Assembly (NCBI GenBank): GCA_964187785.1 | Contig: OZ076414.1 | Span: 4,278,001 to 4,342,000, forward strand | Length of the DNA: 64,000 bases | From: Amphiscolops sp. MND2022 | Taxonomy: Eukaryota | Direction of reading: 5' to 3' | Shown here: piece after piece, positions 25,001 through 52,164 of the stretch | How the letters are laid out: the number at the start of each line of letters is the position of its first letter | How positions within the stretch are numbered: the stretch's first letter is position 1 | Notes under the pieces: model-generated | The model's input: only the letters and a program-made list of their open reading frames with translations | Database searches by the model: none | What the model was told of the DNA's origin: nothing | Translations under genes and position numbers: made by a program

Positions 25001-28000
25001 AATCTGCAAAAATGAATGCTATGGGGTCGCACTTTGAATTCGCACTTTTTTCGTGAGGAATCATTGGTGCAGGTCAGTGACAGTTTTTTGCAATGTAACG
25101 ACACCCTATGGAACGCTATTGAGCGAAAAAAACTGAGATTTGTGCAAAAATTGCAATTTTTCGTGTTTTTTGGTGTTTTCGTTGGTTGGAGCACGAGTGC
25201 TCCGTAAGTCCAACGTAGCCATGCAAAAAAGAGCAAAAGTAACCTCGAGCCCTGAGGAACTCGGGAAAATAATTGTTAACCGTTCCCGCGGCTCTTTCAG
25301 GTAGAAAAGAAGTGATTTGTAGTGAAAAAGTGCGAAAAAATGGAAAACGGGCGAAAAATTACCTAAAACCACAGGTGTAGTCAGGTGTAAAAGCCTGGGG
25401 AGCCGTTGCAAAGTAGTTTCTCAAAAAGCAAAATACAACCCCAGGGCAATGGAATCAGTTTTTGTAGGAAGCTTAGCCGCTCGTGAAACTGCGGATAGGC
25501 AAAAATCTTGTAACTTTGGCCCTTTTGGGCCCTGTAGAGCACATAGTAGAAAGCTCAGCAGAACAAACCTTAGATTGCACGGGAGATCTCGCGCGCTCTT
25601 ATTTTCTGTTTTTGTAGTAAAAATAACGTGTGATGGTGAAAATCGCATGTGAGAATTCCCCATCAGTGCTGAGAAAAGTAGAAAAACGCACTGAATTCGA
25701 CCAAATTTCCACGAAACCGGACTGTCCAATTGTTACAGACGGGTCATAGATCACCGAACCCTGGCCAAAAATGGTGGCATTATTGCAACCACCACAAGAT
25801 TCAACGCTCGTGCCGGAAACTTGGTGAGACTAGTGCTGACCAAACTGGAGTAAAACTCTGACATTTCGACTTCAGAAAGTACTGAAATAGCCGAAAAAAG
25901 CCAAAACTGTAAGACCGATAGTGATTCCCATCTATCAGGCATCACTGATTTAAGGCTCGTGGTAGTGCTGTGACTAGTGGGGTTAAACCCATTTTGCCTG
26001 CAGTAACATTTGTAGTGTCGACCCTTGTAGCCAGTTTGTGAAAAAAGTGCAAAAAAACTGTTTTTGCTAAGATAGTGTCCCCATCAGGTCAAGACATTAG
26101 GTAAGCTCTCGGGCTTCCATCGAATCATTGAACCAGCATTGTGAGGGCCCGTTGGCACCGCTTACCAAGTTTTGTGCCGATTCGTGCAGTAGTTGTTGAG
26201 AAATTGTAAAAAACGTACTGTATAAAAAGAGGTGCAAGAGGGCAAGTTTTTCGAATTTTTTTGGAATTGCTTGAACACCTTAGCCGAAGAGTGGGGACGA
26301 ATTGTAGTCCACTAACAAAAATTGTGCTAGTTGATGCACTGTTACCGAGAAAACCGAACCGCTAACTGACACCAGTGTTGGGAAATTGTGCAAAAAGCGT
26401 GCATTTTGACTCCTACTGATGCATAGGTGTACCGCACATCTGTACCAAGGCGAAATTGTGTACAATCATCGGAGCCCGAATCGACGTTTACCACCGTGAT
26501 TCTACGTGTGCGTAAGATCCTCAGGCCAATTTAGAGCCGGCCCTGACCCTCCGGTGACGAGTACGAGCCACTTGTGTTTTTTGCACTGTCCCAGGAAATT
26601 CAAAAATTGTCGTAAACCGTTCCGTGCTCGCTCCAAAGAACGCGTAGCCCCTAATCGAGCCTAATTTCTGGTATTGTGGTTTGAAAGCCCCGGCTGGACT
26701 CACTTTGAGCTCGCTACGACCCCTAGAAGCGATTTCGAGTCTTTTGAGACGGGCCGAAGGTGAATTTTGGTTAAGTCCTCACCGGAACGATCAGCGGTCG
26801 CGCACCCTCAAAAGAACCCTAGGTACGAAGCATTTGGCCTCTGGGTATACCTGACTGCCTGGTTAATCGACCACAACGGCACACGGCCTTCCCACCCGCG
26901 AACGTGATTATTTGGGCATCGCTGGTAACACCATTAGAGTGCATAGGCAAGCTAAATTAGCTGAAAGCACAATTTTGTGCTTTCATTATCTCGTATTCCA
27001 GGACCATACCTTTGACCTTCCAAAATTGGCAAATTACGTCATAGCCTCGGATTCCACGACAAGCAGGAAAATAACTTGCCTATGCACTGTAATGCCAGTG
27101 GTGCTTTTGTCGACAGTTCTACTTGCCTCAGCACCCTTCCTTACGTAATAAGTAATTGCTACTCCATGTTTTGGGCTGGCAAAGCGGTCATTGCCCTGTT
27201 GCTTACGATCCGTTCAACAGCTACACTCGAAACGAGCGAATCTTGTACCTCCGGAGCCACAGGAACGGGCGAGACACTGGAAGTGAGTTCAATTCAACGC
27301 GAAAGTTCCGGCAGTGACAGTAACTTGAGCCTGCGGGAATGGCCCTCAGTGAACTTTTTAGTGACCAATTCCTCTTTTTCAGAAGCAATGTCTGATAGAG
27401 TTACTCGACCAAGAGTGGAAGGAAGAGCAAAATGCCATGGCTCTTGTCTGAGACAATTCATCAGTTTCGGTGGAACTCCTCCCCACTGGGCAATGGATCC
27501 AAGACACCAGTAGCGGGTTGACGTCACCACAAACGGGCGGATTTTGGCCCAACTCAAATAAAACGGCTTTCGAGGCCCCTCCTTTACGAGAAGGGTGCTC
27601 GAGGGCAGTCGATGAAGGTAGCAGTCCTGGCAGCACAGCTACCGATGCTATCCTTGAGAGCATGACGTATGTGGGCGGCATTAACTATGCCAAGTATCGC
27701 TTGGAGGCCAGCCGTCCGAAGGCCTTCGGGAAGCAGGAGAAGGTGCGTCCTCCGACATTGTGCATGCAGGACGAACTGGACCGTGACAATGCACAGTCAA
27801 TTCGCGATGGTACCACCTCTATCGCCTCGTCACGACGATCATCGGCGTAGCGCGCCGCAGAGGAAGCGACAGCAGCCAGAACCGCGATGTTGCAGGCGGA
27901 AGCTGAGACACAGCGAGCTTTGGCACGCTTAGTGGATAGCCGTGCTGAGTGCAATGAACAGCATAAAGTGATGGCCGCGGAGCTTGAAGCCATGCAAAGC

Positions 28001-30055: not shown

Positions 30056-32484
30056 TTGACGTGTTCCCTCCCTGTATATGCCTGGGACCTCAAGAGCTCA
30101 AAGGCTACAGCATCAGTCGCCAGTAACCCACCGACGAAGCACGAATCATGCCCCCATACAGCACCAATTCCATTGCGAGGTCTGGTTGATACCGGTTCCA
30201 GAGTGTTTTTTCTTACGTTCTCTGCCTTTATTCGAGTCGCTGTCCAAATTAGGGCAGTATTGAAATCCTACCAGATCGACTTGTACTCCGCCAATGGCAA
30301 GACCATCAAAACGTTTGGATTGGCGGAGCGTGTGCGCTTCCAGTTAGGAGGCTACGAGTTGGAAACTAATTTTGTTGTGGTGGACGACGCAATGGGAGTC
30401 CAGGACTTCTTGTTAAGCCGAAACTTCCTCCGGGCGTATCAGGTCCCCGTTGACTTGACATCGATGAAGATCGTGGTTCGTGCGCCAGTCCAACCAGTGT
30501 GGCATCACGTCCATACCCATGTAGGTGACTCCATTTTAGCAGTTCCCGTCGCTTTAGACTGCGACCTAGTGGTGCAACCCTTCAAACGCACGGCTGTGAA
30601 AGCCAAGGTGGTCACTGCCAACCTAGGACCACTAGTGTTTCAAAACGTAGTGCTGAACGCCGCCATTGCGGACGCGTCACTACAGAATGTCGTTTTGTTT
30701 TAGGAGGACTGCGTTGCCACTGTCAGTGAGACAGGCCATGTCTTTATCAGCGTGATGAACCTCACAAGCAACCCACAACGTATCCGTGGCAATACCCACC
30801 TGGGACCTGTGGTACTCGAATTCCTGATGTAGCGAAAAGTACCCCAACAAGTGGATAGTCCAAAACCAAAAAGTGAGGTCGATAAAGACCATGTTGATTC
30901 TGTTATTGAAGTTAATGAGAAAATTATTCTCAGTACCGACTCTCAATTAACTTCTTCGTCGGAATTTGAGTTTTTGTCGTCAACAGATCCTACTGAGGAA
31001 GGCTTTTCAGACCGTGAGAAACGGAAACGCACAGATTCCGAGCTAATGGCTCCCATACCGGGACCAGAGTCGCAGCTACAGGAGGTGAAGGAGCATTTGG
31101 AGTTCTGAAGCGAGCACCTCTTTAGAGAACCTCTTGACCGAGTTTGATTGCTTGTTCATGACACGAAAGGTTGAAATGGGCCGATGCACCAAAGCCAAGC
31201 ACCCAGTAGAGGTTGAATCAGGTGCGTGCCGCACCGTGAAGGTGCCAGGCGTATGTCTCCTGAAAATCAGCACGTGCTAACCCGGAGGTGCGCAACTTGT
31301 TTGCGCTTGGAATGATCCAACATTCACTGTCCCTCTATCGTGATGGTTAAGAAAAAGAACGGTGAATTACGGTTCTGCTGTGACTTCCAGACACTTAACG
31401 AGGTAACCGTCAAAGACTCATACCCGTTGCCCCGAATTGATGAAAGTCTGGTCAGGCTGTGTAAGGCCAAGATCCACACCAGTATTGACCTGGCCTGGGA
31501 TTTCTGGCAAATCCCTGTCCGAAAGGCTGTTTGCCAGAAAACCGCATTTGCCTGTGAACTAGGGCTTTTTGAATGAAGCCACATGCTCTTCGGCAGGTGT
31601 AACGCTTCTGCCACCTTCCAAAGAGCGATAGCTCGAGCGCTACGCAAAAGTGTGAATCGAGAAGGTAGTATGGTGACGGCAATTACATCGACGACATTGT
31701 GATAGCCAAGGAAACCGTGGAAGACCACATGCTGGTCTGCGCGAAGTTTTTGAATGCCTGCGCGAAGCTGGGTTCAAAATGAGAGTTGCCAAGTGTGATT
31801 TCATGAAGTCTGAAATGAAATTCTTGGGCCACGTGGTGTCAGAGGAGGGTGTAAATCCTGACCCTAAAGCCGTTGCGAAACTACGAGGTTGGAAAATTCC
31901 CCGGGACAAAATGGAAATGCAAAGCTTTCTGGTCTTTGCCAACTATTATCGCTCATCCCTTGGCATGCCAAACTTGTTACTCCTTTGCACACCATCACTG
32001 GTGGGAATGCCACTTTCACGTGGGGGTCTGAATAACAGCTGGCCTTCAACGAAATCAAGAATGCGCTCATCGAGGCGACTGCTCTCGCGCAGCCAGACTC
32101 GGAAGGTGAATTTGTTCTGGACACTGACGCCAGTGCCGTGGGGATTTCTGGTATCCTACACCAATGGTAAGGTCCCCAGGAGACAGACGTCTACAACCCC
32201 TTGTCTACGGCAGCAAGAAGTTGACCGCTACCCACGCAAAGTAAGGGGCTCCCAAATTGGAAATGTACACCGCCTACCACTTCATTGTCAAGAACCACAG
32301 TTATTTGTGCCCGCGATGGATAATGGCACTCGAGAAGTACCACTTCCTTGTGGAACACCGACCACGGACACAACATCGCAATGCCGAAGGTTTGTCCAAA
32401 CGGACCAATGACTATCGGTGGCGAGAACAACCGCTAGAAAAACTACCATCTGTAGCTGATCGCTGGACGTTCTTGTATCGCTAG
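30056..32484 (+). pseudogene. pol: pol of Gypsy A (protease-RT-RNase H), disrupted
   Basis: GLVDTGS; VMVKKKNGELRFCCDF..YPLPRID; SIDLAWDFWQIP; YIDD (31684-31695); FVLDTDAS; HRNAEGLS. Confidence 0.9.
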
Positions 32485-35920: not shown

Positions 35921-36039
35921 AAAACAGGTAGAACATCGCCTAAATTTAAGCACAAGGGATGATTGTCTAATTCGCAAACAAGGAAAGAAGCTAGTATGAT
36001 GACCTATTGCCCGGGACTGACGGTCTCAGGGTACCTGCC

Positions 36040-37071
36040 TGTCGGAACGTGTATCAGTTTCATTTGATGTGGTGATGTTAGGTACGTTCCCTTCTCTATT
36101 GCTAGAGGATGGCTTTTCATTAGACGATATTTTCTCGGTCAGAGCAAGAACTAAGTTTGTCAGTTCACTTATTTGTCTAGTCATTTCAGTAAATCTCTGA
36201 TTTACTGCTCGACGTTCTGACTCGCCACTGTAATCCAACAAATTCCCGTTGTCAAACTCACTCATCTGTTCTCTCGTGAGAACTTCTGGGACACTGCTCT
36301 CACTTTCGGTATCGCTATGCCGATCTGTTCGGCACATGAAGGTATGCTGGTTGTCTGTTACTTGGGATCTCGTATTAACCATTTTGAAGAGATATTGGAT
36401 TTTTGAGGTTGTATTGATTGATTATGAGAAAGGTTAAGTATTTTGGTAACAAATCGTGTTTAACTGAGAGGTACGTATTTAGCAACTGTATCGTAATCTA
36501 TCGCAAAATCTTCTGATGTTACTATTTCACCTGGTAATAATTATGGCGACGTTGGTCACGTGACCACATCAACCAATCATATTTCTATTTTTCGTTCGCA
36601 CCTTTGTTAGTAATTGCGCAATATGGTCGCAGCACCAAAATGAATGTAGTTACGTTGCTATGGTTACATGACTCAAATTTGGTATAATGATGTGGTTGCA
36701 CTACTAGCATCATATATGTAAATGGTTAATGTATATAATTGTTTACATGACTAACTGCACCAGAACGAAATCTGATGATGGTGTATCAGCCACATTACTT
36801 TCACTTTTAACTAAAAGTTCACGAGATTGATTTAAATAACATGCATGACAAATGTATGAAATATGGGAGATAATAGTAAAGTTATTTGGGGAATGAATAG
36901 AAATGATGCTTTTTAGCAGATTCGAGTTCGAGTTTTATGATGTGGTTGACTTCACCACATTCTTCCCTTTCATCATCATTCTTTTACTGTTTTGACATTT
37001 TGTTTCTAGTTCAGGTATGCAGGATGGTTGACCACATCATTGTTTGTTATTTTCATGCGTCAGGCATGACA
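36040..37071 (-). repeat. 3' LTR of element B
   Basis: TGTCATGCC...GTTCCGACA; about four differences from the 5' LTR seen by eye. Confidence 0.97.
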
Positions 37072-37090
37072 CTCCGGGTCTTTTTTTTTG
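37072..37090 (-). other. Polypurine tract of element B
   Basis: Minus strand AAAAAAAAAGACCCGGAG directly before the 3' LTR TG. Confidence 0.7.
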
Positions 37091-37207
37091 AAAAAGAACA
37101 TGTGGCTGAAATGGCGAAATGTCTCGTTCAGTTGGTTGGTAGATTGGACGCGGCATGCTAATGAGCAAGGTTGAAAATGCTGTATTCGTTAATTAGATTG
37201 AGCGCTC

Positions 37208-37365
37208 ATGTTGTTATGGTGACCACATTAGTAGTTGCGAGTTGACTTTGTGGTTGGAAATGAGCAGTGATGTTGTTATAGCAACAACATTGGTAGTGGC
37301 GGGATGACATCACGGTCGGAAATAAGCAGCGATGTTGTTATAGTAACCACATTGGTAGTGGCGAA
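37208..37365. repeat. Three-copy imperfect array, period 62 bp, with palindromic cores
   Basis: ATGTTGTTAT(A/G)G..A.CACATT(A/G)GTAGT(T/G)GCG at 37208, 37270 and 37332. Confidence 0.85.
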
Positions 37366-38055
37366 TTGATTTCGTGATTGAAAATATTCGAGTAGATTGT
37401 CGCTTCGGCTCGATATGGCGAGTGAGCGAAGAAAATGTTGGTCACGCATTGGCTGTTCCACTTCGGTAAAGAGTAAATATAGAGTCGATGTGGCGAGGGT
37501 AGCCACGTCATCCAATCGTGCGCATCGTTTGCAGTAAGAGAGTTAAAATAAGAATGAATTTGCCGGAAATTAATCTAACGTGGCAGCGTCATATAATTAC
37601 TCGGCTCATCCGGTAATCGTTCGGAAGTGGTTGTAGTGGAACATCGTGCGCTCTGTAAACAATTCTTCGTCGATGCCAATTACGATAAGCAAACATTTCT
37701 CCAGTATATTCTTTTGTGCGATTCTTCGGCAATTCAGTTCGGCCGCGGCTTACTGAGTGATTGTATCAATGATCAAGTGGGCTATAATTAGGATAAGCCA
37801 GGGAGTCGTATTGTGATTTTGGAGGATTTTTCCGGTAGGCTTTGGCCCTTTTTGGGGTAGTGTGGTTGGTGAATTTCAGGAATTAGGTTATCCCTTTGGA
37901 TTTTTTGGGTAGTTACTTTGCATAGACAATGTGGGTGATCAGTCCACATGATCATTGGAAGTTACTTTGAACCTCAGTAAATCGCAAACGACTGTGTGCT
38001 TTCAGTTCAATTGCCTCAAGTTGATTACTTTTCAGACTTGCTTGTTATTACTGTC

Positions 38056-38311
38056 ATGAGTTCACCGGCGCAGGAAGGGCCGTCCCAGGCTGATGCAGAA
38101 GTAGCTGCAGTTGTGTTGGCAGCAGAAGGAGTGCTCACCGAGCTGGAGCAGTTCAGTTTCTCTTCGATAGGTAGTGAATTGCCTGCTGCTGTCGAGGAAA
38201 CCCTGTCGGGAGAGCGTTTTGGAACGTGTTGTCGCTTTGCGGGCAAGGTGACTGCTTCCAACAATGAGGCAGCTAACACGTTGTTGGAGATTGCGCTATC
38301 GAGTGAATTCC
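38056..38311 (+). CDS. hAT/ZBED-like cargo gene, exon 1
   Basis: ATG at 38056 (MSSPAQEG..), donor C|GTGAGT, phase 1; an upstream TTTTCAG acceptor suggests a 5' UTR intron. Confidence 0.7.
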
Positions 38312-38583
38312 GTGAGTAGTCTCATTATTTCTTTTCTTTTGCCCTCGCTGTGTGTAATTAGCGCTCAGGTAGTTTTGTAGGACAGTGACATCCGTAGTCG
38401 TGGGTCACAAGTAGTTTTTTCGAAATAATAACCGATAAAGGTTATCTTTCCTTCAGAGCATTCTGAATTATTGTAAGCCAGTATGTCGTTTGAGCGGTAC
38501 TAGCATTGAGGCATGTGTACTTCCCGGGATCCAATGCTCTGGGTAACTGAGGAGGTGGTTAATGAGACATTATTGTGCTTCAG

Positions 38584-38718
38584 AAGATTTATCGCTTGTA
38601 GACGTCGTAAAGTTACTCCGCTCACTGCTGGCTTCGAAACGAGGTGATGCCGCGGGTGGTTCACCCGAAATAACTGCTGTGGAAGATCGCTTCAGTTCCG
38701 TCCTTGCTGGTGAACTGG
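38584..38718 (+). CDS. hAT/ZBED-like cargo gene, exon 2
   Basis: GTGCTTCAG acceptor, G|GTAAGT donor, phase 1-1. Confidence 0.7.
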
Positions 38719-38844
38719 GTAAGTGGTCGGTTGTCATACATCATATCGAGTATACTGCTAGTCTTGGTTCGGTGTTTGGGTCGGCTGTGGTCCGTATGTC
38801 GTGTGACACACGTCATATAGCGGAAAAACTGATTTGTGTTGTAG

Positions 38845-39234
38845 GAACTTCTGCTGGCGTGCCCGTGACAAGGGCTGAAATGGAGTCTTCGCTGGCACGA
38901 ATGACGAAAGAATTGTCAGAGACAATCAAAGCAGTAATAGATGCGAAGTTCGGAGAGTTGGGTCCTGTTGGTGTGTTGGCAATCGAAGACTGTGTGCAGA
39001 AGTTGAAGGCGGCTACGGGCCAACTTGCGGGGGTTGCAATGACTTCTGGGAGCGGGGCGGATCAGGTCGTACCAGCTGTGCCTCCCGTTCAGTTGGAAGA
39101 GTCGATCAGTCCTGTGGCCGTTAGTAGTGCAGCGTCCTTCACTCCAAGTCAGTTGTCCGATGTGCCAACTGCGTTCGGAGGAGTGCGGTCGTTGGTGTCG
39201 ACGGGTGGAGGAGCTGCTACCTCATCAAAACCTG
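38845..39234 (+). CDS. hAT/ZBED-like cargo gene, exon 3
   Basis: GTGTTGTAG acceptor, G|GTAAAG donor, phase 1-1; helical then low-complexity sequence. Confidence 0.65.
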
Positions 39235-39411
39235 GTAAAGAATCTCAAAAGATCATGGGAGGGGTTTTAGTAACAGTTCCCAAACTCAAGGTATATAGGA
39301 GACTACACACGTTTTTTTTTGTTTTTTTTTTGAATTTAACGGGGGGTTAGGAGTCGTTGCTAGCACTATTTTGGGTTGCTGGTTTGCGTGTGAGTGTGTC
39401 GATTATTTCAG

Positions 39412-39974
39412 CGCGAGTGAGGAAAGTGAAGACGTTGAAGCCTTCATACTTTGTCTCAGGCGTGGTCGGGACTTTCGTGGGCTTCCCCCGACACAAACGA
39501 GTGGTGGATGGCTACGCTAGATGTCTCCTCTGTAAAGTAGATCTCAGCATTGCTGGGCGTGGCTTGTCTTCGTTGTGGGAACATTGGCGAGGCGTAGGAC
39601 ATACGCGCCTTGAGCAAAAGTATCGCATAATGATGCAAATGCCACTACTTGATAAAGCTTGCCGCCCAGTAACCGCAGAGGAGGATAGACGAATTCGCCA
39701 AGAAAGGATGACAGAGCCTCCAGTGTATCTGGAGTCCGAGTTGAGTTTGTCCGTGGATGAGAGGGTCGCGATTGAAGAGGCCGAAGCGTCTGCTGGTGAA
39801 AGACCAACATTGCCTACAGAGAGTGCGGCTTACCTGTGGTTAGGCCAATTCATAAGCAGCATTTGCAATGTTGCTTCGTTCGGTTCTGTGATGAGGATGG
39901 TGGAGTCATGGCGAGATGGTATGAGTGCTGAGCTACGTGTCGAGTGTCGCTCCTTGACTTATGCCCGATGTCAG
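39412..39974 (+). CDS. hAT/ZBED-like cargo gene, exon 4 (BED-like zinc finger)
   Basis: ATTTCAG acceptor, CAG|GTACGT donor. ARCLLCKVDLSIAGRGLSSLWEHWRGVGH (C-x2-C..H-x5-H). Confidence 0.8.
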
Positions 39975-40144
39975 GTACGTGTATACATTTGCTGTTTTTG
40001 GGCTTTAGTACTGAATGCGTGTTTGCGGGCTTTGGTTGTGAAAAGGGGGGGTTTCTCAACGCGTTGATATGGGTACAGTTGTTTTTGTGTGAATCTATGA
40101 GGTGAAGGTGAGCTCCTCATTTGTGTGATTGGCTGTGTTTACAG

Positions 40145-40633
40145 AGTTTGGTGTTGTACGCACTGTACCGGTTCGTCGTCGAACAGTTGGACTGTCTGCT
40201 ATCCCGTGGTAAGAATGTTGGTTTGAGCTTGAGAAGACAGAACTCTGATTGGATCTGTGAGTGTCATGTGGTCGGAGACTGTGCGATCAAGACTGTGGTT
40301 TTTGGCGTAGTGGCCGCCGGAGCTGGGTGGGAGACGAGTATGATTGCCAATGTAGTACCAGTGTTACTCAGTTTGCAACATGCCTCAAATATCAAGATGT
40401 ATAGCACTGAGTCTGAGACCCGAATTGGACATGCTCTAGCAGCAGCAATTGGAATCACTGATCCCTTGGTTGTCGGTCGAGTGACCCAAATATGGTTGTT
40501 GGATCTCGTGAGGAAGCAATTCCTAGCGGAATTTGGCGGTCTCGACCCACTCAGCGTGTTGGACTACTTGCGTGTTCGTTTAGCCGCTGTAGTGCAGGAG
40601 GGCTTCATGGATCGATTGCCGAAACTTAGACGA
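40145..40633 (+). CDS. hAT/ZBED-like cargo gene, exon 5 (RNase-H-like core, degenerate)
   Basis: GTTTACAG acceptor, CGA|GTAAGT donor, phase 0-0. Confidence 0.8.
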
Positions 40634-40798
40634 GTAAGTACTTGGCATTATCGTTTATGATGTGGGTATGTATAGGACATTGGTTCGTTAATATATACAC
40701 GGATATATTTTATTGTTTTTGGTAAATTGAAACGTTAGGTGCGTAGCCTATGACAGTAAGTAGATTATGTCAAACTTTCAGCTGTGTTTTTTTTGCAG

Positions 40799-41009
40799 TT
40801 CATTCGCTTTGGAGGGAGTGATGTGGTTGTGTTGGCCTCATTGTGTACTGAAGTCGTTGAGCACTGGAATGATCTAGCTGTGTACTTTGGCACTCACAGG
40901 CCTAGCGTGACTTCTGAGCTGCGTCTGGTTACTCCGCTTGAGGTGCAAGTTTTCGACGATGCAATGATGCGCCCCCGGTTTGCTGTGTTACGACTCATTC
41001 TGGATTTGC
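40799..41009 (+). CDS. hAT/ZBED-like cargo gene, exon 6
   Basis: T-rich GCAG acceptor, C|GTTAGT donor. IRF..LCTEVVEHWNDLAVYF resembles hAT TRW.S..RILEQW..L..YF. Confidence 0.8.
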
Positions 41010-41202
41010 GTTAGTTGTCACACGTTTCGATTTTTTTTGTTTTTTTTGTTGATTTTTTTTGTTTGGGTTTTGAATTTGGTGTGATGTAGTAAGTGGCTAG
41101 ACATAGGCGCGTTTTTCAATATGACTCTTTTGGTGAAGTAATCCTAAGTCGGAAAAAAGAGGGTATGAACGCTGATTCATGTGTTTTGTTTTGTGTTTGC
41201 AG

Positions 41203-42539
41203 TAGTCGAGACTTGTCCGCGTTTGTGCAGAAGTGGCAGAGACAGTAACATGTTAGCAGAGCGCGAGCTGTCACAATTCGTCCGAAAACTTATGTGTTTC
41301 GTGTATCCGCCTTCAGTGATCCCTGCGGAATTTGAAGTGAGAGCCCTGCTGGCACCGGTAGACTGCGAGTACGCGACAGTGGACGAGGGCCTTTACAAGC
41401 TGCACTTCGGGCAATATTTCCGATACGACGTACGAACCCAGTTGCCGTTCTTTTATAGATCGGTTCAGAAATTGTTGGGCGTTGTTTGTCGGGAAGTAAC
41501 AGGAGCATGGGAGCAAGGTGCTATTAGTCACTTTAGTATGACCCCGTTTGATCCAGAATTGATTCACAGAGGATCTGACGATCGGTGTATCGATGCTCTG
41601 GTTGGCACGTGTGCTACTCTGTCGAGATATCAACTCCTTGATGATGACGATGTTACTGCTGTACTACGACAATATCGGGAAGTGACACAATTCTTCAAGA
41701 AGAAGTGGACGTTGACAGAAAATGCACCGGTAGTTGACGACGTGGTAACTATGTGGTTCTCTTATCCCTACTGGTCACGATGTCAAGAGTTGTTGACCGT
41801 GGTCAACATTCTGTTTGGGCTGAATGCAGTTGGGACTTATGAGCTAGATTTTGTCGATGATGTGGACGTTGCGATGCCGGTAGATACCCTACGTTCCAGT
41901 TTACATTTTGTTCGGAGTTGGCTTGCCAAGTCTTATGCGGGACATACGCGTCAAACTCTAACTGGATTGCTACGAGTGTGCGAGACGAGTGATATGCAGG
42001 TCACTCGATTATCCGATGAGGCTCGAAGTAGACCATGGGATCAGCTGATGAAATCTGGGTTAGGTGAAGCCTTGGCGCGTGGTAATGCTACTTTGTCCAA
42101 TGAACTGTCACTCCCAACCACGGTGCGGATAGATGATTACCGGTCGAACGTATTGGCGCAACTTGATCTTGTGGAAGTGCTGAGTCCTCCCCGTGCCGGA
42201 AGGCGTAGTAGCCCGGTTCTTAAGCGCGGTACCTCAGTTAAGAAAGTTGTTCGGCGACAAGAAGACGTTACGTTGCCAGCAAGTGGATCTACCCCTATTC
42301 GGTCGTTGCAGCGAAGCAGGACGTCAATTCGGAAAAGTGCGAGGAGCGCAGTTCGTGAAGGGCCGTCTACAAGTCGTCAGCCTAGCGGGCGCCGGACTGG
42401 TGGAAAACCTCGGGGCAAGAAGTTCTTGCAGTTAGCAACCGTTGGTGACTCCGATAATGACTCGGCTAATGAAGTGGTTGTGAGTGGAAAGAAACGGCAA
42501 AGCCGTTGTGCACTATACTCATCGGATGAGCAAGATTAG
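41203..42539 (+). CDS. hAT/ZBED-like cargo gene, exon 7 (dimerisation-like region and basic tail)
   Basis: TTTGCAG acceptor, phase 1. DDVVTMW..WSRCQELLTVVNILFGLNAVGTYELDF; R/K/S-rich tail; ATTAAA at 42604. Confidence 0.8.
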
Positions 42540-44138
42540 AAGAAACTGGATAGAGAACATTTCGTGATTGAGTCAATTATTTTGCATTTGTTTTTTTTTT
42601 ATTATTAAACGTTTGAAGTTGGGATATTTGTTCTTGGCATGTTGACGTGCCTTTTGCTGTTACTATTTGGTGTTTGTGTATTCCTCGCTCTAGATGCTTG
42701 ATGGTTTATATGTAGACTTTACATGCGTTGTTTACATACTTTTAGTAGTGCTGATTGATTTCTTGGCTCAGCTTTGATTTCACGCGTGAGCAGGTGGTTA
42801 ATTTACATGTTGCTTACGTTATACAAATTTTTTACATGGGGGCTTCGTTAGCTGGTTTCAATTTGTCAGGAAGCTGAGTAGAGTTGTTTTTTTGTTTCAG
42901 TGAGATTGTATGGTGGTTACTTGCGTAGCCACCAATTTAGACAGAGTTTCATTCACGGAGGTTTACCCACAGGTCTCGGAAAGTGGTATTGAGGCCCTGT
43001 GGTTACACCAAGGTGAATGAACGGAGCTGTACCGCTCCTTCCCAATGATCGAACTAGATGCTTTGCAGGCTATATATACTCTAAGTGCGTGTGTTTTAAC
43101 TGGTGTTTACACGCATAAGTGTCATTCTAAGGTGTCAATCATTTTTTTTGTTTTGCTTTATATGTGTTGTTATACTCGTAAAATTGAGCGTTAGTTCTGA
43201 CGTCGTCATCACTGATGTGTGTCATGAGACGTCATCACTCGTGACGTGTGTCAAATGGTAACGTCAATTTAATGGAAGATGGGTTTCCCCATGTCAATTA
43301 AACAGATTTTTTTTCTCTTTTACAAGGGGTGGTCTGATCCATCCCTTGTTTCGAATTTTCGGGTATGTAGTGATAGTGACTACATGTGCTTTAAGTACCT
43401 TGTTCTTTCTGACGCGAGGCGAGGCCTACGAATCACCAGTAATAACGAGGGTGTCACGACTTAATTGTCGGGTGAAGTTGGCGTGACGACTGCATGTTAC
43501 TGTCCTTAAGAAGTTTCGCTTTGCTTTCAGTTCATTTGGGAGGTTATTTGCCGTCGCAAAAACCCATTCAAAACTAACACCGAATCCACTTGCTAAAGAG
43601 CAAGCTTCATCTGAATGTTTGTGCAACCACACAGACGCGCTTTTGACGACGCACCCACACAGCCGAACCACATCATGGCTTTCTGGAGCGGAAGTGTGAG
43701 ACTAGGTTCTGTTGACGTAACTTAAACGAGTCGGCGTTTTCTTTTTTGTACTCAACTATGGACTGAGACGTGTTTGAAAACAGTTTAGTTTAGCTGATTC
43801 AGGATTGGTGGGTGCAGAATTACCGAGCAATTCCTTTGAAAGTGTGTGGTTGGGATTTTTCGTGAATTGCATAATTTATTAGGTCGTTTGTACGTGCTTT
43901 ACATGTACTTAACAATTTCCGGTTGGAGTGATGTGGTGTATGTGACTGCATTTCATGTATTTACTTTAGCGCTCAGCTTTCTCGGTAGAGAGTAACATTT
44001 TACTCTGCCGGTAAACTTGAGTATGTAGGACAGTGAGTGTCAGTCGTCACTGAATGGTGTAAAATAAATAGGATAATTCAATGGTATGATTGCTGCATGT
44101 GGTGATATAGACTACATTGTATTGATTGCATGTATTCT

Positions 44139-47100
44139 CTATTGGCTTTCAGATTTGCGTTGCATGAATTTTAAAAGGGCGGGCTTTGCTTGCAGTTCGT
44201 GAACGAGGAAGTTGTCGAACGTTTTAGGCACAGGTGCCTCACGAAGGCTGTATCGAGTAATGTTGTTGCGTGTTATCGGTGTAGGTGTTTCGGCAGATGA
44301 TGTGGTTGACTCCGCATCATTATGTGTCGGAATTTGTTTTTCAGACTCATGATTAGGCAGCGATGTAGGTGGTTCGTCAGATTGAATTTCAGTTCTATTT
44401 TGGTACGTATTTTCGGTGCGGATGGCTTCAGGAAGCGGGTTAGACAGAGGTGGGACTTCGTGAACCCGTTTGTGTTCATAATAAATTGTTCCGTGCTCGG
44501 AAGCGATTGCTTCAGTTTCGTTTGTGTCGAGTTCAAATGTGTTTTCAGCTGGCGGTGATCGTTCGATTGCAGGCAGATTATCGTTGAATATTGACTGATC
44601 GTCAATTGCGTCAGGATCACTGTAATGTCGGTTTACGTCATCAGTCACGTCTTCAATTTTGTCGTGAGGTACAAATGGGCGGAGCCGCATTCTATGTACG
44701 CACTGCGTCTTGAAGGTACCGACTTTTCGGATGATATAATTCGATTGTGTCAAGACCTTAACAACTTTGTAAGGTCCTTCCCATTTGAAAGAGTTGAAAG
44801 GGATTTTTTCTGATTGTGTGCTGATTTTAGGATTCAGTAAAAAAAACAAAGTCGTTTACTCTAATGGTGATGCTTGTGCCTTTCGGTCATAGTACGCTTT
44901 GTACTTGTGAAAGGCTCGGATGATATTGGTGTGAGTTTCTTTGAATTTGGTGTTCAGGTTGTCCACTAACGACTGTGTATCAGTGGCATTCCTCGGGGGA
45001 CTAAGAGGGTTGCCAAATTTTAAGTCTAGTGCGTTGTATGGCACGCGGCCGTGGAAGACTTCAGTCGGTGAACATTTCAGGGTTTGGTGGTAGGTCGTAT
45101 TGTGCGCCATCACAGAGAGGTTGACGTATCGGTCCCACTGAGGGCGGTCGGCAGAGACGTTTATTTTCAGAATCTGTTTCAAACGTTGATGCGACCTTTC
45201 GATCATCCCAATAGTTTGGGCATGTTTGATTGTCGCGTGGGAAACTTTTATCCCAGACTTTTCCATCAGTTCAGTTATTACTTGTGAGGTGAAGGCAGAA
45301 CCTTTGTCAGTGATGATGTGTTTTGGCACATATGCGTGTTTTGTGAAAATGTCTAGCAGAGCCTCGACGACAGATTTTGTGTCAGGTTTACGGATTGGGA
45401 TGGCAAACAGATATCGTGAAAAGTAGTCGCAGGCCGTCAGAATGTGTGAGTACCCATTAGATCGCGGTAACTCACCTACGAGATCAATTTCCAGGACGTC
45501 TTCAGGACCATTGCAAGGGTCGTATATCGGTTCAAGCGGTGGTTTCACGGTGTTAGGTTTCACAGGTTTAGCTTTAATACAGTCTTGGCAGTTGTTTACA
45601 AAGTTTTGGACCTTTTCAGCTAAGTTCGGGATGTAGTACCTTTTCCTTAGTTCAGCTAACATTTTGGAAGCGCCAGGGTGTCCCTGCATGGGGTCGCCAT
45701 GCATCGTCCTGATTATGGCTTCCGTAGTTTCTGGAGGAACTACAATTTGTCGGTAAGCTAAGTTTCCTACGTTGTCAAAAAACTGCCTGTACAACGCGTT
45801 GTTCACTACTTCAAGTCTTTTACGGTTCTTAAAGAGTTTTTGGAAAAAGGTACTTGTAAAGTTCACTTGGTTCGGAGGAGTTTCTTGGACAGTAAGGATC
45901 CTAATTACACGTTGAACGTCACTGTTTTCGCCTTGAGCCTTAACAATTTCTGAAGTCCCCGAAGGGCATACCTGATTTACCGCGTGAACCTGGTTCCGTT
46001 GGCAAAATCGGGTGAAGAACAGTGCTGGGTCAGAGGGCGTTACAAATGGTTGCACCTGGGTTTTGATGTCATCAATGCGTCTACGGTACTGTTCGTCGTC
46101 TTCGTGACACCATTGAGGGAACATCGCCAAGAGTGACTGCATCGTTGGATTTGGTGGTGTTGTAGCATCAGGCACATTCGTCGCGTCTGGAATGTAATCG
46201 TCTTCCTCATCGTCCTGTTTGGGTGTTTTTGATGCCAAGTCAATTTCGACCTTGAAGACTGGTATCTCGTCGTGTAGCTTGAGGTGGATCTTGTCCTTTG
46301 GGTGGATGTCGATTCTGGACAGGTAGTCAGCTGCTGGGTTCTCGACTCCAGGTACATGGGCCAGGACGAAGTCGAATTGGAGGGCTTGGTCGCAGTAGTT
46401 CCACAGTTTAGGAGGTATTCGTTTAGACTGGAAGAATCTTGTGAGGGCTTTGTTGTCAGTCATGACGATTGTCGGTTTCTTCACTCCCCACAAGATATGA
46501 GCGAACTCATCAAATGCGAAGTGCATAGCCAGGAACTCTTTTGCATACATCGTGAGCGACATCTGGCCCTCAGTAAACCTTTGTGAACCAAAGGCTACTG
46601 GTGCGTATGGCTTCGTCGGTCCGTCATTCGTCTCAGTGTAATCCTCGATCAAGAGAACGTATCCAGCTGCATGCTCGCTAGCATCGCACATGATCACTAG
46701 TTGTTTGTCCGGAAGTGGTAGTCGCAGGGACATCTTGGCTGCGTTTGCTAGGTTCTCATTGATGTCGAACATGGCATCTTTGTGGACTTGCGTTAGTTCG
46801 AATTTGGCGTCTTTCTGTAGGAGTTTGTAGAGTGGAACAAGTTTTTCTGCTAGGCATGGAATGTATTGGCGGTAGAATTGGACGAATCCAATGTATCGTT
46901 GTAAAGATTTCACAGACGTCGGTAATTTGATGTTTTTCAAAAACTTGTCAAATTTTTCTTCGATGGGGGCTACTCCCTTGGAGGTGATGCTACGTCCCAG
47001 GAATTCCATCTCAGGGTGTCCGAAAGCACATTTGGCCATCGACAGTTTCAGGCCAGCTTGTTTGAGTTTCATGAACACAGCCTCAATGTTGTCGACTAGC

Positions 47101-48788
47101 TTTTCGACATTGTTGGCTGCAATGCCGATGTCATCGACGTATTGGGCACATTTGTCGGCCTTGACCAAGGGGTCCAAGTACTCTCGAACAGTACTGTTGA
47201 AGGCTGATAGTGATCGATTCAATCCTTGGGCTAGTCTGAGGTAGGCGAACGTCCTACTTCCGAAGTTGAAAGCGAGTAACTGGACTGACTGTTCATCTGC
47301 CATTTGCAAACAATGGTATGCTTGTGAACAGTCCAGTTTGCAGAAATATCGCTTTCCTGCCATGTGTTGTGCTGCGTCTGCCATCGTCGTCACCGGATGG
47401 TTGTGCTGATTGTAGTCATTCTTCAGCAAGTGATTGATCCGTCTGAGGTCTACGAGGATTCTAAGCTTCCCATTTGGTTTGCGTTGGGCGAAGATGGGTG
47501 AAGAGTACTTGCTGTACGGCAATGTTGTGATTATGCCGTACTCCTGCATCAACGCCAATTCAACCAGTAAGTCGTCTTTCAGGTTCGTCGGTGTGGGTAA
47601 GCTTTGAGCATAGACTGGTTCGTCGTGTTTGGGAGTCAACTTTATCTTGAATTCGGTGTTGATCCCTATGTCCAGTCTATGTCTGGCGAATATATCATGG
47701 TACTTGACCAATAGGGCCTCGATTTTCTGTTTCTCGTGAAGGCTCAGTATTGATTGTTCCCACTGGAAATTTGCCAGAAATTCATGGCGTTGTTCGTCAC
47801 TTGCTGTTGGATCTAGATTCTCCTCGGCCCTGAGTTTGACGATTTCGTCATAGATTCGTTTTTCAATCTTGTTGAGTTTTGACGTGTCGTCACAAGTCTC
47901 AGGGGTAGGGTACCATCTTCTATCTGATGTGGTAGTCGGATCCTGGAAGATTTGGTTCAAGACAGCTTCGGCATCATCTGGGTACTGGGAAATCAGGTTT
48001 AGTTGGTGGTTGGTCATCGGTTGGAGGTTGTTGGCTTGCTTCGGTGTCATTATTTTGAATGAAGCCACTGGTGTACCCACATTGATGGTAATTTGGTAGT
48101 CGAGTGGGTTTGTGATCTGGACATGAGTCCGCCCCTCCTGGGTCTGGTTGAGAGCTGGAGAAACCAACAGATGTGAGCGTCTTTCAAAGGCTGGTAGTCC
48201 TTCGACAGTGCCAGTGATGTCGCCTAGGTCGCGTTCAATCACCACCGGGACGAACACTTGTTGATTGGGTTGGATCACAGTCTTCTGAGTTGTCTTCAAT
48301 TCGAGTAGTTTGTTTTTGAATTTCCCGTTGACTGATCGTAATTGGAGGGTGATGTCCGGGAATTTGACGATGTTGTTGGCTAAATCCAGGGTAACGGAGT
48401 ATTTTTTGAAGAATGACATTCCAATGAGTATATTCCCCATCGTTGGGAGGACCATGAATGTCTCTTCGAAGATTTTTCTCCCGATGAAGAATCGTAGTAG
48501 GACTTGTTTCCTCACTGGAACGATGTTTCCATTGGCGATATGCACTTTGAACTCCGGAGCAGGGAGTTCCTGGAGGAGGGCGGCTGGGTGTGCTGTGAGG
48601 ATGCGGCGGAGTTCCGCTTCTGAGAGAGCACTTTGGATTGCTCCCGTGTCAAGTAGTCCGAAGTTTTCATATTCGCGGAATTGAAGTGGTACGTATAACA
48701 TCTTGTCCTTTTTGTTGAGTTGCAGGGTGGCACTCAACTGGCGTATTTCGTACTTCGGTTTCTTCTGTTGGTTTCCTGGTTTTGACAT
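44139..48788 (-). CDS. pol: pol of element B (protease, RT, RNase H, integrase, GPY/F), one in-frame TAA at 44856-44858
   Basis: LLDTGA, QYVDDIG, VIMCDASE, H..GHPG..CQDC, IDLVGELP, TDKGSAF..IERSH, KWEGPYKV. Confidence 0.98.
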
Positions 48789-49069
48789 AGTGGTTCGTTT
48801 CTCATCATTCGGTTGGTCAGGCAGTGTGCGATATGAAATCGGGTGTTGGATGTTGTGGGCTTCAGGTCTTCGTTTGGTCTCCTTCGGTTTAATGGTGTAG
48901 TTGTCAGTTAAGTGTCTCGTGATGACGAAGTTAGTAGTTTCCTTAGTGTAAGTAGGAGGACGGGACTGCCACCCCGTGTGGTTTGCAGTATGTAGTCGGG
49001 TCAGAGGAGTAGTTTGTTGGTGTTGGTTTAGTAGCGCACTTTCGTATGTTTGAGGAGGATGACGTGGCT

Positions 49070-50605
49070 TTAGAAGTTTTTTGGATCTTCTACGTCATCG
49101 TGTCGTTCTGTTTCCTCAGCATCTTCGATATCGTCGTTGGCAGTGTGGGACATTTCATTGGCGTTGTAGACCCTACTGTTGGTCTGTTTGAAGTCCCTTC
49201 TAAATTGTCGGTTTTCCTCGGTCGATTGCTTAGGGTACGGGACGCTTCGGTAGGCGGACGTCCCCGTGTTCCTGTAGTAGCAATCTCGGGCGGAGTGTCC
49301 CACTTTGCTACAAGTTTGGCACACAAGTTTGGGGTTATATCTGGGCTTGATCTCTTGAGTTTGGGCGGGTTGGGTTGGTTGTTGCTGGTTTTGGCCATGG
49401 GGTTTGGTTTGTGCTTCCTCCCGGAGGCGTTTCCTGCACTCAACCCACTTGTGGCCATGTATTCCGCAGTGGCCACATTGGCCATCAAATTTTCGTTTTG
49501 CCTCCCTGGGTTGTTGGGTTTGGACGTTTGATGTCTGAGGTGTGGCTACATTCGGCAGGGGTGCGCTTATCTGATTGAATGGTTGCGCACTGGTTGTATT
49601 AGGAATGAGCTGCGCATACTGACATCTGCGCTGCACAAATGTCCTGATCTCCTCCATCGATGCATCATGTTTGCCTGCCATGGCCAAATCGTTTTGCATT
49701 TGAACGAGGAGTTTCGCAAATAGAAACGTCTCTGTAATATCGCTGGACTTGTCCCCAAATGCCTGCTTTGCGACTTTTTTGAACTTGTTGAGGAAGTCAT
49801 TGAAGGTCTCTGCTGAAGGGTCGTAGCGCATCTGGTCGAATTTGTATTTGGCCACTTCCTTCAAAACTTCTTTTGCGTATTCCTTCTTGAAGTAACGCAG
49901 TACTTGGGCCAGTGTTGTCTGGTTCGTTATTTTCAGCGATTGCCAAAATTCAATGGCATCGTCGCGTAACAGGCTCTGGAAGTATGTCAGTTTCTGTTCT
50001 TCTGACAATTTGTGTTGGTGTGGCCTGAGGTGGTTGAGCAGCAGGTGCTCAAACTCGTTGTACTTTTCTCGGTTTCCGCGGAATAGTGGGACTTGTGTGT
50101 GCAAAATTTTTGGATGTTGCACCGTGTCCGTCATCGTGTCCCTCAGGTGGTGAATTTCAGTGACAATGTCGTCGAACTGCTGAGCGGATGACTGAGGGTA
50201 TTGTGAGGTGGATTGGCGTGGTGGGTTCGGTAGTTGGCTGGTTGTTGGAACTCCTGTCACCATGTCGGAACGTGTATCAGTTTCATTTGATGTGGTGATG
50301 TTAGGTACGTTCCCTTCTCTATTGCTAGAGGATGGCTTTTCATTAGACGATATTTTCTCGGTCAGAGCAAGAACTAAGTTTGTCAGTTCACTTATTTGTC
50401 TAGTCATTTCAGTAAATCTCTGATTTACAGCTCGACGTTCTGACTCGCCACTGTAATCCAACAAATTCCCGTTGTCAAACTCACTCATCTGTTCTCTCGT
50501 GAGAACTTCTGGGACACTGCTCTCACTTTCGGTATCGCTATGCCGATCTGTTCGGCACATGAAGGTATGCTGGTTGTCTGTTACTTGGGATCTCGTATTA
50601 ACCAT
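49070..50605 (-). CDS. gag: gag of element B (511 aa, two CCHC knuckles)
   Basis: CGHCGIHGHKWVEC and CQTCSKVGHSARDC; uninterrupted ORF. Confidence 0.95.
   Translation of the reverse strand: MVNTRSQVTDNQHTFMCRTDRHSDTESESSVPEVLTREQMSEFDNGNLLDYSGESERRAVNQRFTEMTRQISELTNLVLALTEKISSNEKPSSSNREGNVPNITTSNETDTRSDMVTGVPTTSQLPNPPRQSTSQYPQSSAQQFDDIVTEIHHLRDTMTDTVQHPKILHTQVPLFRGNREKYNEFEHLLLNHLRPHQHKLSEEQKLTYFQSLLRDDAIEFWQSLKITNQTTLAQVLRYFKKEYAKEVLKEVAKYKFDQMRYDPSAETFNDFLNKFKKVAKQAFGDKSSDITETFLFAKLLVQMQNDLAMAGKHDASMEEIRTFVQRRCQYAQLIPNTTSAQPFNQISAPLPNVATPQTSNVQTQQPREAKRKFDGQCGHCGIHGHKWVECRKRLREEAQTKPHGQNQQQPTQPAQTQEIKPRYNPKLVCQTCSKVGHSARDCYYRNTGTSAYRSVPYPKQSTEENRQFRRDFKQTNSRVYNANEMSHTANDDIEDAEETERHDDVEDPKNF
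49076..49082 (-). other. -1 ribosomal frameshift slippery site A AAA AAC
   Basis: X XXY YYZ heptamer in the gag frame, two codons before the stop. The -1 frame is open into pol (both codon starts are 2 mod 3). Confidence 0.8.
50245..50262 (-). other. Primer-binding site TGGTGACAGGAGT..
   Basis: TGG immediately after the LTR-terminal CA. Similar, from memory, to tRNA-Leu-type PBS TGGTGTCAGGAGT; the primer identity is uncertain. Confidence 0.75.
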
Positions 50606-51295
50606 TTTGAAGAGATATTGGATTTTTGAGGTTGTATTGATTGATTATGAGAAAGGTTAAGTATTTTGGTAACAAATCGTGTTTAACTGAGAGGTACGTA
50701 TTTAGCAACTGTATCGTAATCTATCGCAAAATCTTCTGATGTTACTATTTCACCTGGTAATAATTATGGCGACGTTGGTCACGTGACCACATCAACCAAT
50801 CATATTTCTATTTTTCGTTCGCACCTTTGTTAGTAATTGCGCAATATGGTCGCAGCACCAAAATGAATGTAGTTACGTTGCTATGGTCACATGACTCAAA
50901 TTTGGTATAATGATGTGGTTGCACTACTAGCATCATATATGTAAATGGTTAATGTATATAATTGTTTACATGACTAACTGCACCAGAACGAAATCTGATG
51001 ATGGTGTATCAGCCACATTACTTTCACTTTTAACTAAAAGTTCACGAGATTGATTTAAATAACATGCATGACAAATGTATGAAATATGGGAGATAATAGT
51101 AAAGTTATTTGGGGGAATGAATAGAAATGATGCTTTTTAGCAGATTCGAGTTCGAGTTTTATGATGTGGTTGACTTCACCACATTCTTCCCTTTCATCAT
51201 CATTCTTTTACTGTTTTGACATTTTGTTTCTAGTTCAGGTATGCAGGATGGTTGACCACATCATTGTTTGATATTTTCATGCGTCAGGCATGACA
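50263..51295 (-). repeat. 5' LTR of element B
   Basis: Direct repeat of 36040-37071 (offset 14223-14224). Confidence 0.97.
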
Positions 51296-52164
51296 CTGCC
51301 CGTTTTCGTAGGCATCTCGGCATCTCGTTTGACTCCAATTTGGAAGGTTCACACTGTAGTCTGAAGTCCTTCTTTTTAAATTGAAATAGTTCAGTTATTT
51401 TAGATTATTTCAGAATAGGGATGCGAAGTACTTAAAGAAGACTCTAACAAATCTGCAGTTATTAGGTCTTTAAAAAACGGTAACAATTTGATGGTGAAAA
51501 CTTTATTTCACTTGTGTACGGTTATACATCAGATAATTGCTTTACGGTATAAGGTATTGTATTGAATATAAATTAGATACATTAAAACTCAAGATACATA
51601 ATTCAAGTCGAAACATCCATATAAAAGGTGGAGGATGATGATTGAATATAAGAGTATAGGTATATCAATTCAATCCTCGGGATGTTGGCACTGTAGCTAG
51701 TAAAGACCACATTGATTCTTCCAAGTAAATAGAGATGCGCTCACGCACTACCGTTGTCTGACTCATACACGTTCTCTATTTCAAACTTAGCTGGTGCCCG
51801 CCGTGTTCATCCGTCTCTTGATTGGCATGCCTCACCTCTAAGCCAGATTTGGCTGGAACGAAATTTTCACACTGTAGCTTTGCAGCCATCGATAATGAGA
51901 CTTTATTTATTTTCACAACTTTCTAAAGGTTTTTATTGTCCCCGTAACTGATCGGCAAAAAAAAAGAGCTTTGGTTGTTATGTTCTTGGGCGTAATGCCT
52001 TGACACCAACAAGCGCAAAGAAGTACTTGTTTATATGTTGTACGTTGTTGTTTAATGCAGATGGCGAATGAAATACGGAATACGAGGTGCTGCAGTATTG
52101 GGTCTTAAATACGAAAGCGTGAGGGAATTAAATTGTATCATTCGTCTGTTGCGGTATAAAAATA

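Follow-up and report, generated by a model that had tools for sequence, protein, structure and literature searches.

A conserved antisense gene with seven predicted exons between pol and the 3' LTR of a Ty3/gypsy retrotransposon from Amphiscolops

Extra genes carried by long terminal repeat (LTR) retrotransposons show simple retroelements gaining retrovirus-like complexity. In human T-cell leukemia virus type 1 (HTLV-1), splicing of an antisense transcript gives the message for HBZ, a protein encoded near the 3' LTR that acts in the nucleus to regulate transcription of the element itself. Antisense open reading frames (ORFs) located between pol and the 3' LTR, termed aORF-3R, have been described as gene23 of maize Grande, in rice RIRE2 and in the Retand elements of Silene and angiosperms (PMC7264820, PMC11963269). 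They are kept in most copies of a lineage, their products are predicted or were shown to be nuclear or DNA-binding, tandem repeats often lie nearby, and the Retand antisense ORF carries a transposase-associated domain, Transposase_28 (PMC7264820, PMC11963269). Here we describe element B, a Ty3/gypsy LTR retrotransposon on the minus strand of a 64,000-nucleotide stretch from Amphiscolops sp. MND2022 (assembly GCA_964187785.1, contig OZ076414.1, positions 4,278,001 to 4,342,000; hereafter the window, in which all coordinates are given unless another locus is named), together with the accessory gene that it carries on the opposite strand. Element B shares with Grande, RIRE2 and Retand the position of this gene between pol and the 3' LTR, its antisense orientation and an unusually long 3' internal region. 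As in aORF-3R elements, the conserved antisense ORF is present in most copies, being found in the window, in three full-length siblings of the same assembly (L002, L003 and L004) and in a disrupted one (L001).

The antisense gene lies on the plus strand, opposite to gag (49070-50605) and pol (44856-48788). A first-pass annotation of this DNA had claimed that seven antisense exons join into one stop-free ORF of ~1126 aa, and this was reproduced by an exhaustive search for GT..AG introns in 38056-42539 with the exon lengths it had given (256+135+390+563+489+211+1337 nt). The search returned four stop-free solutions differing at two alternative junctions only, among which the preferred model was picked by splice-site conservation in homologues; it comprises seven exons encoding 1,126 codons followed by a stop. 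Exon 1 (38056-38311) starts at the ATG, encodes an acidic N-terminus and ends at a donor, GAATTC./GTRAGT (the slash marks the exon border), that is kept in L001-L004. Exon 2 (38584-38718) follows from the GT..AG model, and its match in L002 lies in a frame other than that of exon 3. Exon 3 (38845-39234) encodes a helical and then low-complexity segment and ends at the conserved donor AAACCTG/GTAAGA, and exon 4 (39412-39974), with the conserved donor TGTCAG/GTAYGT, encodes a CX2CX16HX5H finger, a charged linker and helices. AlphaFold predicts an RNase H-like beta-beta-beta-alpha-beta-alpha unit in exon 5 (40145-40633), and exon 6 (40799-41009), placed by the GT..AG model and homologues, holds a conserved E(V/I)VE.W(N/D)DL.VY helix. 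Exon 7 (41203-42539), defined by homologues and the model, codes first for a conserved stretch that is all-alpha and then for a disordered, basic tail, in which the GRRTGGKP motif is invariant and which turns acidic (SSDE) just ahead of the stop codon. A candidate polyadenylation signal, ATTAAA, may be read 65 nt past the stop codon (42604-42609). Directly ahead of the ATG (37990-38055) stand two acceptor-like sites (tttcag, ttttcag), both kept in L002, which suggests an intron in the 5' untranslated region and a transcription start farther upstream, possibly in or near the 3' LTR.

The reading frames of this strand are far beyond chance. Between 37073 and 44138 the plus strand holds stop-free runs of 1,368, 801, 714 and 546 nt, whereas in 2,000 shuffles of the same region the longest run was 684 nt and runs of at least 450 nt had a mean of 0.06, against four observed. 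These long open runs occur even though the plus strand is T- and G-rich here, a composition that favours stop codons. The minus strand of 37073-44138 has no stop-free run above 348 nt, and no minus-strand ORF longer than 106 aa was found in the ~7 kb from pol to the 3' LTR.

The accessory gene belongs to the LTR retrotransposon. We fetched the genomic context of four homologues, L001 to L004, all in the same assembly as the window. L002, L003 and L004 are full-length siblings with their own LTR pairs (99.3%, 98.3% and 94.1% identical, respectively), and all three have the gene in antisense between the 3' LTR and pol, as in the window. In L001 the gene is found beside an LTR remnant, and a nested gypsy pol disrupts the element. 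Pol and exon 7 rank the siblings alike by identity to the window, with pol at 92% in L002, 88% in L003 and about 68% in L004 and exon 7 at 66%, 49% and 41%, respectively, and this co-divergence indicates that the gene was inherited with the element while evolving faster than pol.

The exon structure is conserved along with the gene. When the spliced protein of the window was compared by tblastn to L001-L004, the matches began and ended at the predicted exon borders, with changes of frame between blocks, and all six introns were found at homologous positions, with donors of the GT(A/G)AGT type and polypyrimidine-CAG/TAG acceptors. Between the window and L002, exons are 71-79% identical at the nucleotide level, whereas most of the intron sequence has no blastn match. 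Intron 4 is open in frame by chance in L002 and in the P0043 family, where it appears as unalignable hydrophobic sequence between well-conserved exons. The Nei-Gojobori method yielded proportions of nonsynonymous differences (pN) of 0.08-0.18 versus 0.61-0.84 for synonymous differences (pS), that is, a ratio omega of ~0.06-0.12 where the synonymous distance (dS) was computable. Judged from these sequence comparisons, the spliced gene is genuine and subject to strong purifying selection, and the first-pass proposal of a maintained accessory gene of a class I element, for which a selection analysis of the cargo had been advised, is well borne out by its presence in L002-L004 and in the disrupted L001 and by the low omega. 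The L003 copy has a premature stop in exon 4, just past the zinc finger (L003 8515-8517), which indicates that single insertions decay although the gene is retained in the lineage. In the comparison of the window with L002, the antisense gene is saturated at synonymous sites (pS as above, some values >0.75), as opposed to a dS of 0.58 in pol and 0.41 in gag and to LTRs that are 88% identical; the contrast could stem from recombination between lineages, from constraint on the synonymous sites of gag-pol or from a mutation bias specific to one strand.

The family extends beyond these copies. For the exon 7 ORF, 38 homologues of 39-98% identity were found, all from ENA assemblies, and the 90%-identity cluster nearest to exon 7 of the window (98% identical) has 30 members, each on a single contig. 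A profile of the folded part of exon 7 retrieved 179 sequences out of 1.84 billion representative proteins; these were only unannotated ORF fragments of at most 548 aa, and neither a full-length annotated protein nor a hAT protein was found among them. Much more remote is the homologue L006 (23-25% identity), which comes from the metagenome of a marine biofilm and is split into exons 5, 6 and 7 in the same way. Neither the finger profile nor that of exon 7 found relatives when run against Joint Genome Institute metagenome contigs.

The hAT transposases (Hermes, Ac, hobo) have a BED-type CCHH finger at the N-terminus, followed by an RNase H-like unit and then by a long stretch of helices, and their domesticated derivatives, such as ZBED1/DREF, ZBED6 and DAYSLEEPER, are DNA-binding regulators that have lost the DDE residues. 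The first-pass annotation had assigned the antisense product to this group by quoted motifs, all four of which are present, in exons 4, 5, 6 and 7. In the exon 4 finger the zinc ligands are invariant among homologues and an F.GF motif lies upstream. Pfam zf-BED was the most frequent weak family, appearing in 3 of 21 homologues with a best E of 0.0015 that falls short of the gathering score, and the sole match of the finger profile in the whole PDB was the BED domain of ZBED2, at E 1.2; the two results agree, neither is significant, and the finger may be called weakly BED-like.

Structure prediction was run on exon 7 alone and on the L002 ORF that reads through intron 4 and so spans exons 4 and 5. 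The latter model contains three strands, a helix, a strand and a helix at a predicted local distance difference test score (pLDDT) of ~80. With it, Foldseek returned no match in the PDB at E<=0.001; RNase H-like folds made up about half of the 50 best matches, including six chains of the Hermes transposase (best E 0.046, probability 0.63), which gave the longest alignments with ~200 aligned columns, as well as the HIV-1 integrase core, RuvC, the RuvC of Cas12, hexokinases and the RNase H of Ty3 reverse transcriptase. Exons 6 and 7 are predicted to be all-alpha at low confidence, and Foldseek with the exon 7 model gave noise and no structural match. In the comparison with Hermes that had been advised, an RNase H-like unit was predicted in exon 5 and Hermes was among the top matches, but none of these matches was significant and the models were poor.

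The catalytic residues of a transposase are not kept. The beta1 position reads R, H or T in homologues, so that no Asp is conserved; an acidic residue is kept after beta4 (E, with D in L006); and the E of 'ELDF' is replaced by N, S or R in homologues, where Y..DF is conserved. As the DDE triad is not conserved, an active transposase is ruled out, and such a loss is expected of a dead derivative. The earlier view that a DDE triad is lacking holds, the beta1 and C-terminal acidic positions both being unconserved. The Trp of E(V/I)VE.W(N/D)DL is conserved even in L006. The RW-like 'HWNDL' and the 'YP.W..C..L' motif are conserved in the family, and their likeness to hAT proteins is a resemblance only; the conserved motifs, including those in L006, appear to sit where hAT blocks would be expected. 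The C-terminal tail is basic up to its acidic end and bears the invariant GRRTGGKP motif.

We propose that the Ty3/gypsy clade of element B has long carried, between pol and the 3' LTR, an accessory gene that would be transcribed from the opposite strand. Its introns would be antisense on the genomic RNA of the element and would be copied faithfully at each retrotransposition: introns in this orientation cannot be removed from the genomic RNA by splicing and so survive reverse transcription. Retrotransposition reporters with antisense introns rest on the same logic. The 1,126-aa product would be arranged, after an acidic N-terminus, as a BED-like CCHH finger, an RNase H-like core in which the DDE triad is not conserved, a long region made up of alpha-helices and a basic tail, and is probably a nuclear, non-catalytic DNA-binding protein acting in trans for the element. 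Its likeliest role would be that of a regulator of transcription from the LTR or from an antisense promoter, or of chromatin, an integration tether being less likely; both roles are suggested by analogy with HBZ, the nuclear product of Grande gene23 and the TRP28 proteins of Retand. Taken as a whole, the proposal of a long-carried antisense seven-exon accessory gene, whose non-catalytic DNA-binding product acts for the element, appears to us fairly probable. More tentatively, a Ty3/gypsy clade in a non-plant, probably marine eukaryote may have permanently recruited a dead hAT-type transposase as an intron-bearing antisense gene, using its DNA-binding and oligomerisation scaffold; this is a possibility that we would rate below an even chance. 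With such a scaffold the element might regulate its own transcription, escape silencing or select where it integrates.

Several points weigh against this proposal and the hAT ancestry attached to it. Expression and splicing are deduced from conservation, and processed intron-less copies were looked for among 285 fetched proteins, where none was found. The window copy itself, despite the 99.6% identity of its LTRs, may be non-autonomous by reason of a broken integrase C-terminus: at 44830-44880(-) its pol has, relative to L002 and L003, a 1-nt deletion followed ~20 nt later by a 1-nt insertion, and the short out-of-frame stretch of pol holds a TAA (44856-44858) that truncates the integrase ahead of its GPY/F C-terminal module (FKWEGPYKV). 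Both AlphaFold models are poor overall (mean pLDDT 45.7 for exon 7 and 50.3 for the L002 ORF), with the zinc-finger region below 50, and all Foldseek matches had an E of at least 0.02, none being significant for hAT. Pfam searches at E<=10 with 46 homologues of exons 5 and 7 gave no hAT family, and profile searches of the PDB with homologues of the same exons gave no hAT match. To these may be added that Dimer_Tnp_hAT had no Pfam match at E<=10 in 25 exon-7 homologues nor in the distant homologues, that Pfam found nothing significant in any plus-strand ORF, that phmmer and profile searches of PDB sequences with exons 4, 5 and 7 gave nothing relevant, and that a search of the window and the fetched loci for the S-E-R-x-F-S pattern of a genuine hAT transposase found none.

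The alternative that fares best accepts a real accessory gene and places its origin outside hAT, the finger and the RNase H-like unit coming from another transposase superfamily, from a host nuclease or zinc-finger gene, or from convergence. It fits the lack of any significant hAT, Dimer_Tnp_hAT or Hermes match in all sequence and structure searches, the sub-threshold BED signal, the close ranking of HIV integrase, RuvC and Cas12 RuvC to Hermes in Foldseek, and the yield of the 1.84 billion-representative search, limited to unannotated ORF fragments. It fits less well with a domain order that is specifically hAT-like, with the length of the Hermes alignments (~200 columns in six chains) and with motifs conserved down to L006, at 23-25% identity, in places where hAT blocks would be expected. 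We regard such an origin as less likely than not but a serious possibility. The order of finger, RNase H-like unit and ~400 aa of helices fits a decayed hAT transposase, and we take a hAT origin as the most likely one, with about an even chance of being correct. The hAT derivation claimed at first pass is thus weakly supported, by a finger that is BED-like below threshold and by a predicted RNase H-like unit whose match to Hermes is not significant; neither Dimer_Tnp_hAT nor any other hAT family was found in exons 5-7 by the searches above.

A second alternative would place the function in the antisense RNA, for instance in self-regulation through double-stranded or small RNA, with the frame incidental or decaying. 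Antisense transcripts without coding function have been described for micropia, TART and IAP (PMC7264820), and some copies of the gene of element B do contain stop codons, as in exon 4 of L003. It is nevertheless very unlikely, as the protein is under strong purifying selection in the face of saturation at synonymous sites, copies with as little as 40% identity retain the frames and splice sites, the zinc ligands are invariant, and the open runs exceed chance on a T-rich strand. Weakest is the idea of a hAT DNA transposon nested by chance in one retrotransposon copy, for even if nested insertions are common in repeat-rich genomes and L001 has a nested gypsy pol beside the gene, it is effectively refuted, and left highly improbable, by an inverted-repeat search around the gene that found only chance-level repeats of 12-26 nt, none flanking it, with no terminal inverted repeats or 8-bp duplications, by the same position and orientation in three full-length, diverged siblings each with its own LTR pair, by co-divergence with pol and by a strand skew shared with the element.

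The element that carries the gene shows the features of a Ty3/gypsy LTR retrotransposon, namely an LTR pair, a short target site duplication, a primer-binding site, a polypurine tract and the corresponding order of pol domains. Element B occupies 36040-51295 on the minus strand (15,256 bp) of a window that contains 0 runs of N. Its LTRs, located by direct-repeat search and blastn, are ~1,032 bp each, 99.6% identical over 1,035 bp and bounded by TG..CA, with the 3' LTR at 36040-37071 and the 5' LTR at 50263-51295, and the element is young. It is flanked by two copies of the target site duplication CTGCC, at 36035-36039 and 51296-51300. The polypurine tract, A10GACCCGGAG (37072-37090, minus strand), adjoins the 3' LTR, and the primer-binding site, TGGTGACAGGAGTTCC (50247-50262, minus strand), follows the 5' LTR within the gag ORF. 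The ORF list and Pfam place gag, with a CCHC knuckle and a start codon within the 5' LTR, at 49070-50605 on the minus strand. Pol, encoding protease, reverse transcriptase, RNase H and integrase, extends over 44139-48788 on the same strand; its main ORF (44856-48788, 1,310 codons) contains an aspartyl protease (residues 45-129), RVT_1 (436-598), RT_RNaseH (666-800), Integrase_H2C2 (1017-1075) and rve (1094-1186) in the order of Ty3/gypsy, and Integrase_p58_C lies in the next in-frame ORF, the pol continuation at 44139-44849(-). Plus-strand G/T skew is uniform over the whole element, the antisense gene included.

Some further traits of the locus were observed. The start codon of gag is located ~340 bp inside the LTR (50263-50605; counterpart 36040-36382), so that U5 and the primer-binding site are translated as part of gag, an arrangement that resembles that of yeast Ty1; an ORF in the 3' LTR (36026-36382, minus strand, about 114-118 codons) is the same gag-like ORF start. 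A 62-bp unit is tandemly repeated in three copies (37199-37384) a short way in from the 3' LTR and ahead of the antisense gene; the repeat was considered as a conserved binding array and rejected, since it is missing from L002 and L003. A partly palindromic cluster of CRE/ATF-like TGACGT(C/G) sites occupies 43195-43255, between the end of the antisense gene and that of pol. In L001, a 3.6-kb satellite array with an 88-bp period (L001 903-4498) abuts the LTR remnant, and immediately past the antisense gene comes another gypsy pol of opposite orientation, so that the copy looks nested or rearranged. Elsewhere in the window, a GC-richer region (22034-26480 and 30056-30703), presumably what the earlier annotation called 'element A', contains a direct duplication of ~1.4 kb with 3.0-kb spacing and 94-100% identity, and an ORF in it has a weak match to retroviral-type aspartyl proteases and no similarity to the antisense gene. 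An Rfam search of the window and the fetched loci gave no match.

Element B offers a clean example of an extra gene, being represented by young, multi-copy elements of several lineages with a large accessory gene under strong purifying selection and with conserved introns of a kind that reverse transcription leaves only to antisense genes. If the hAT ancestry is true, a DNA-transposase scaffold would serve a retrotransposon, that is, a class II protein would work for a class I element, and finger mutants and LTR binding would provide testable handles on the role of an antisense accessory protein. Class II domains have been connected with class I elements before, in Retand, whose antisense ORF carries Transposase_28, and the class II-to-class I gene capture put forward at first pass would be overstated if taken as the first of its kind (PMC7264820, PMC11963269). 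No homology to the plant genes was seen, Pfam giving no match to Transposase_28 (PF04195) or to any other family in the plus-strand ORFs and their homologues.

The gene of element B differs from those of Grande, RIRE2 and Retand by its seven exons, with introns conserved across lineages, and by a much larger product (1,126 aa) with a predicted BED-like finger and RNase H-like unit. The host, too, is probably marine and does not resemble a flowering plant, as judged from the marine-biofilm homologue and from weak, indirect Pfam signals. As with HBZ of HTLV-1, an accessory protein is encoded opposite to gag-pol near the 3' LTR, but HBZ is a small basic leucine zipper protein whose gene has one intron and a promoter in the 3' LTR, whereas the gene of element B encodes an unrelated protein and has six introns in its coding region. 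The hAT transposases and their derivatives have the same order of finger, RNase H-like unit and helices as that predicted for the product of element B; the derivatives, however, are host genes, whereas this gene is the cargo of a retrotransposon, shows no significant match to them and has no detectable hAT C-terminal dimerisation domain. Extra genes captured downstream of pol are also known from animal Ty3/gypsy-type elements, as the ORF3s of Juno and Vesta in bdelloid rotifers and as CERV of Cer1 in C. elegans, and are described there as sense-strand ORFs of the env, DEDDy, GDSL and coiled-coil families rather than as antisense and intron-containing (PMC5408684, PMC10309623). In the literature that we consulted, no LTR retrotransposon was described with an extra ORF that has a BED finger or is hAT-like. 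Compared with all of these systems, what is new in element B is a gene family for which no relative is annotated, the large size of the gene, the conservation of six introns in its coding region, the BED-like and RNase H-like parts of its product and its occurrence in a probably marine, non-plant eukaryote.

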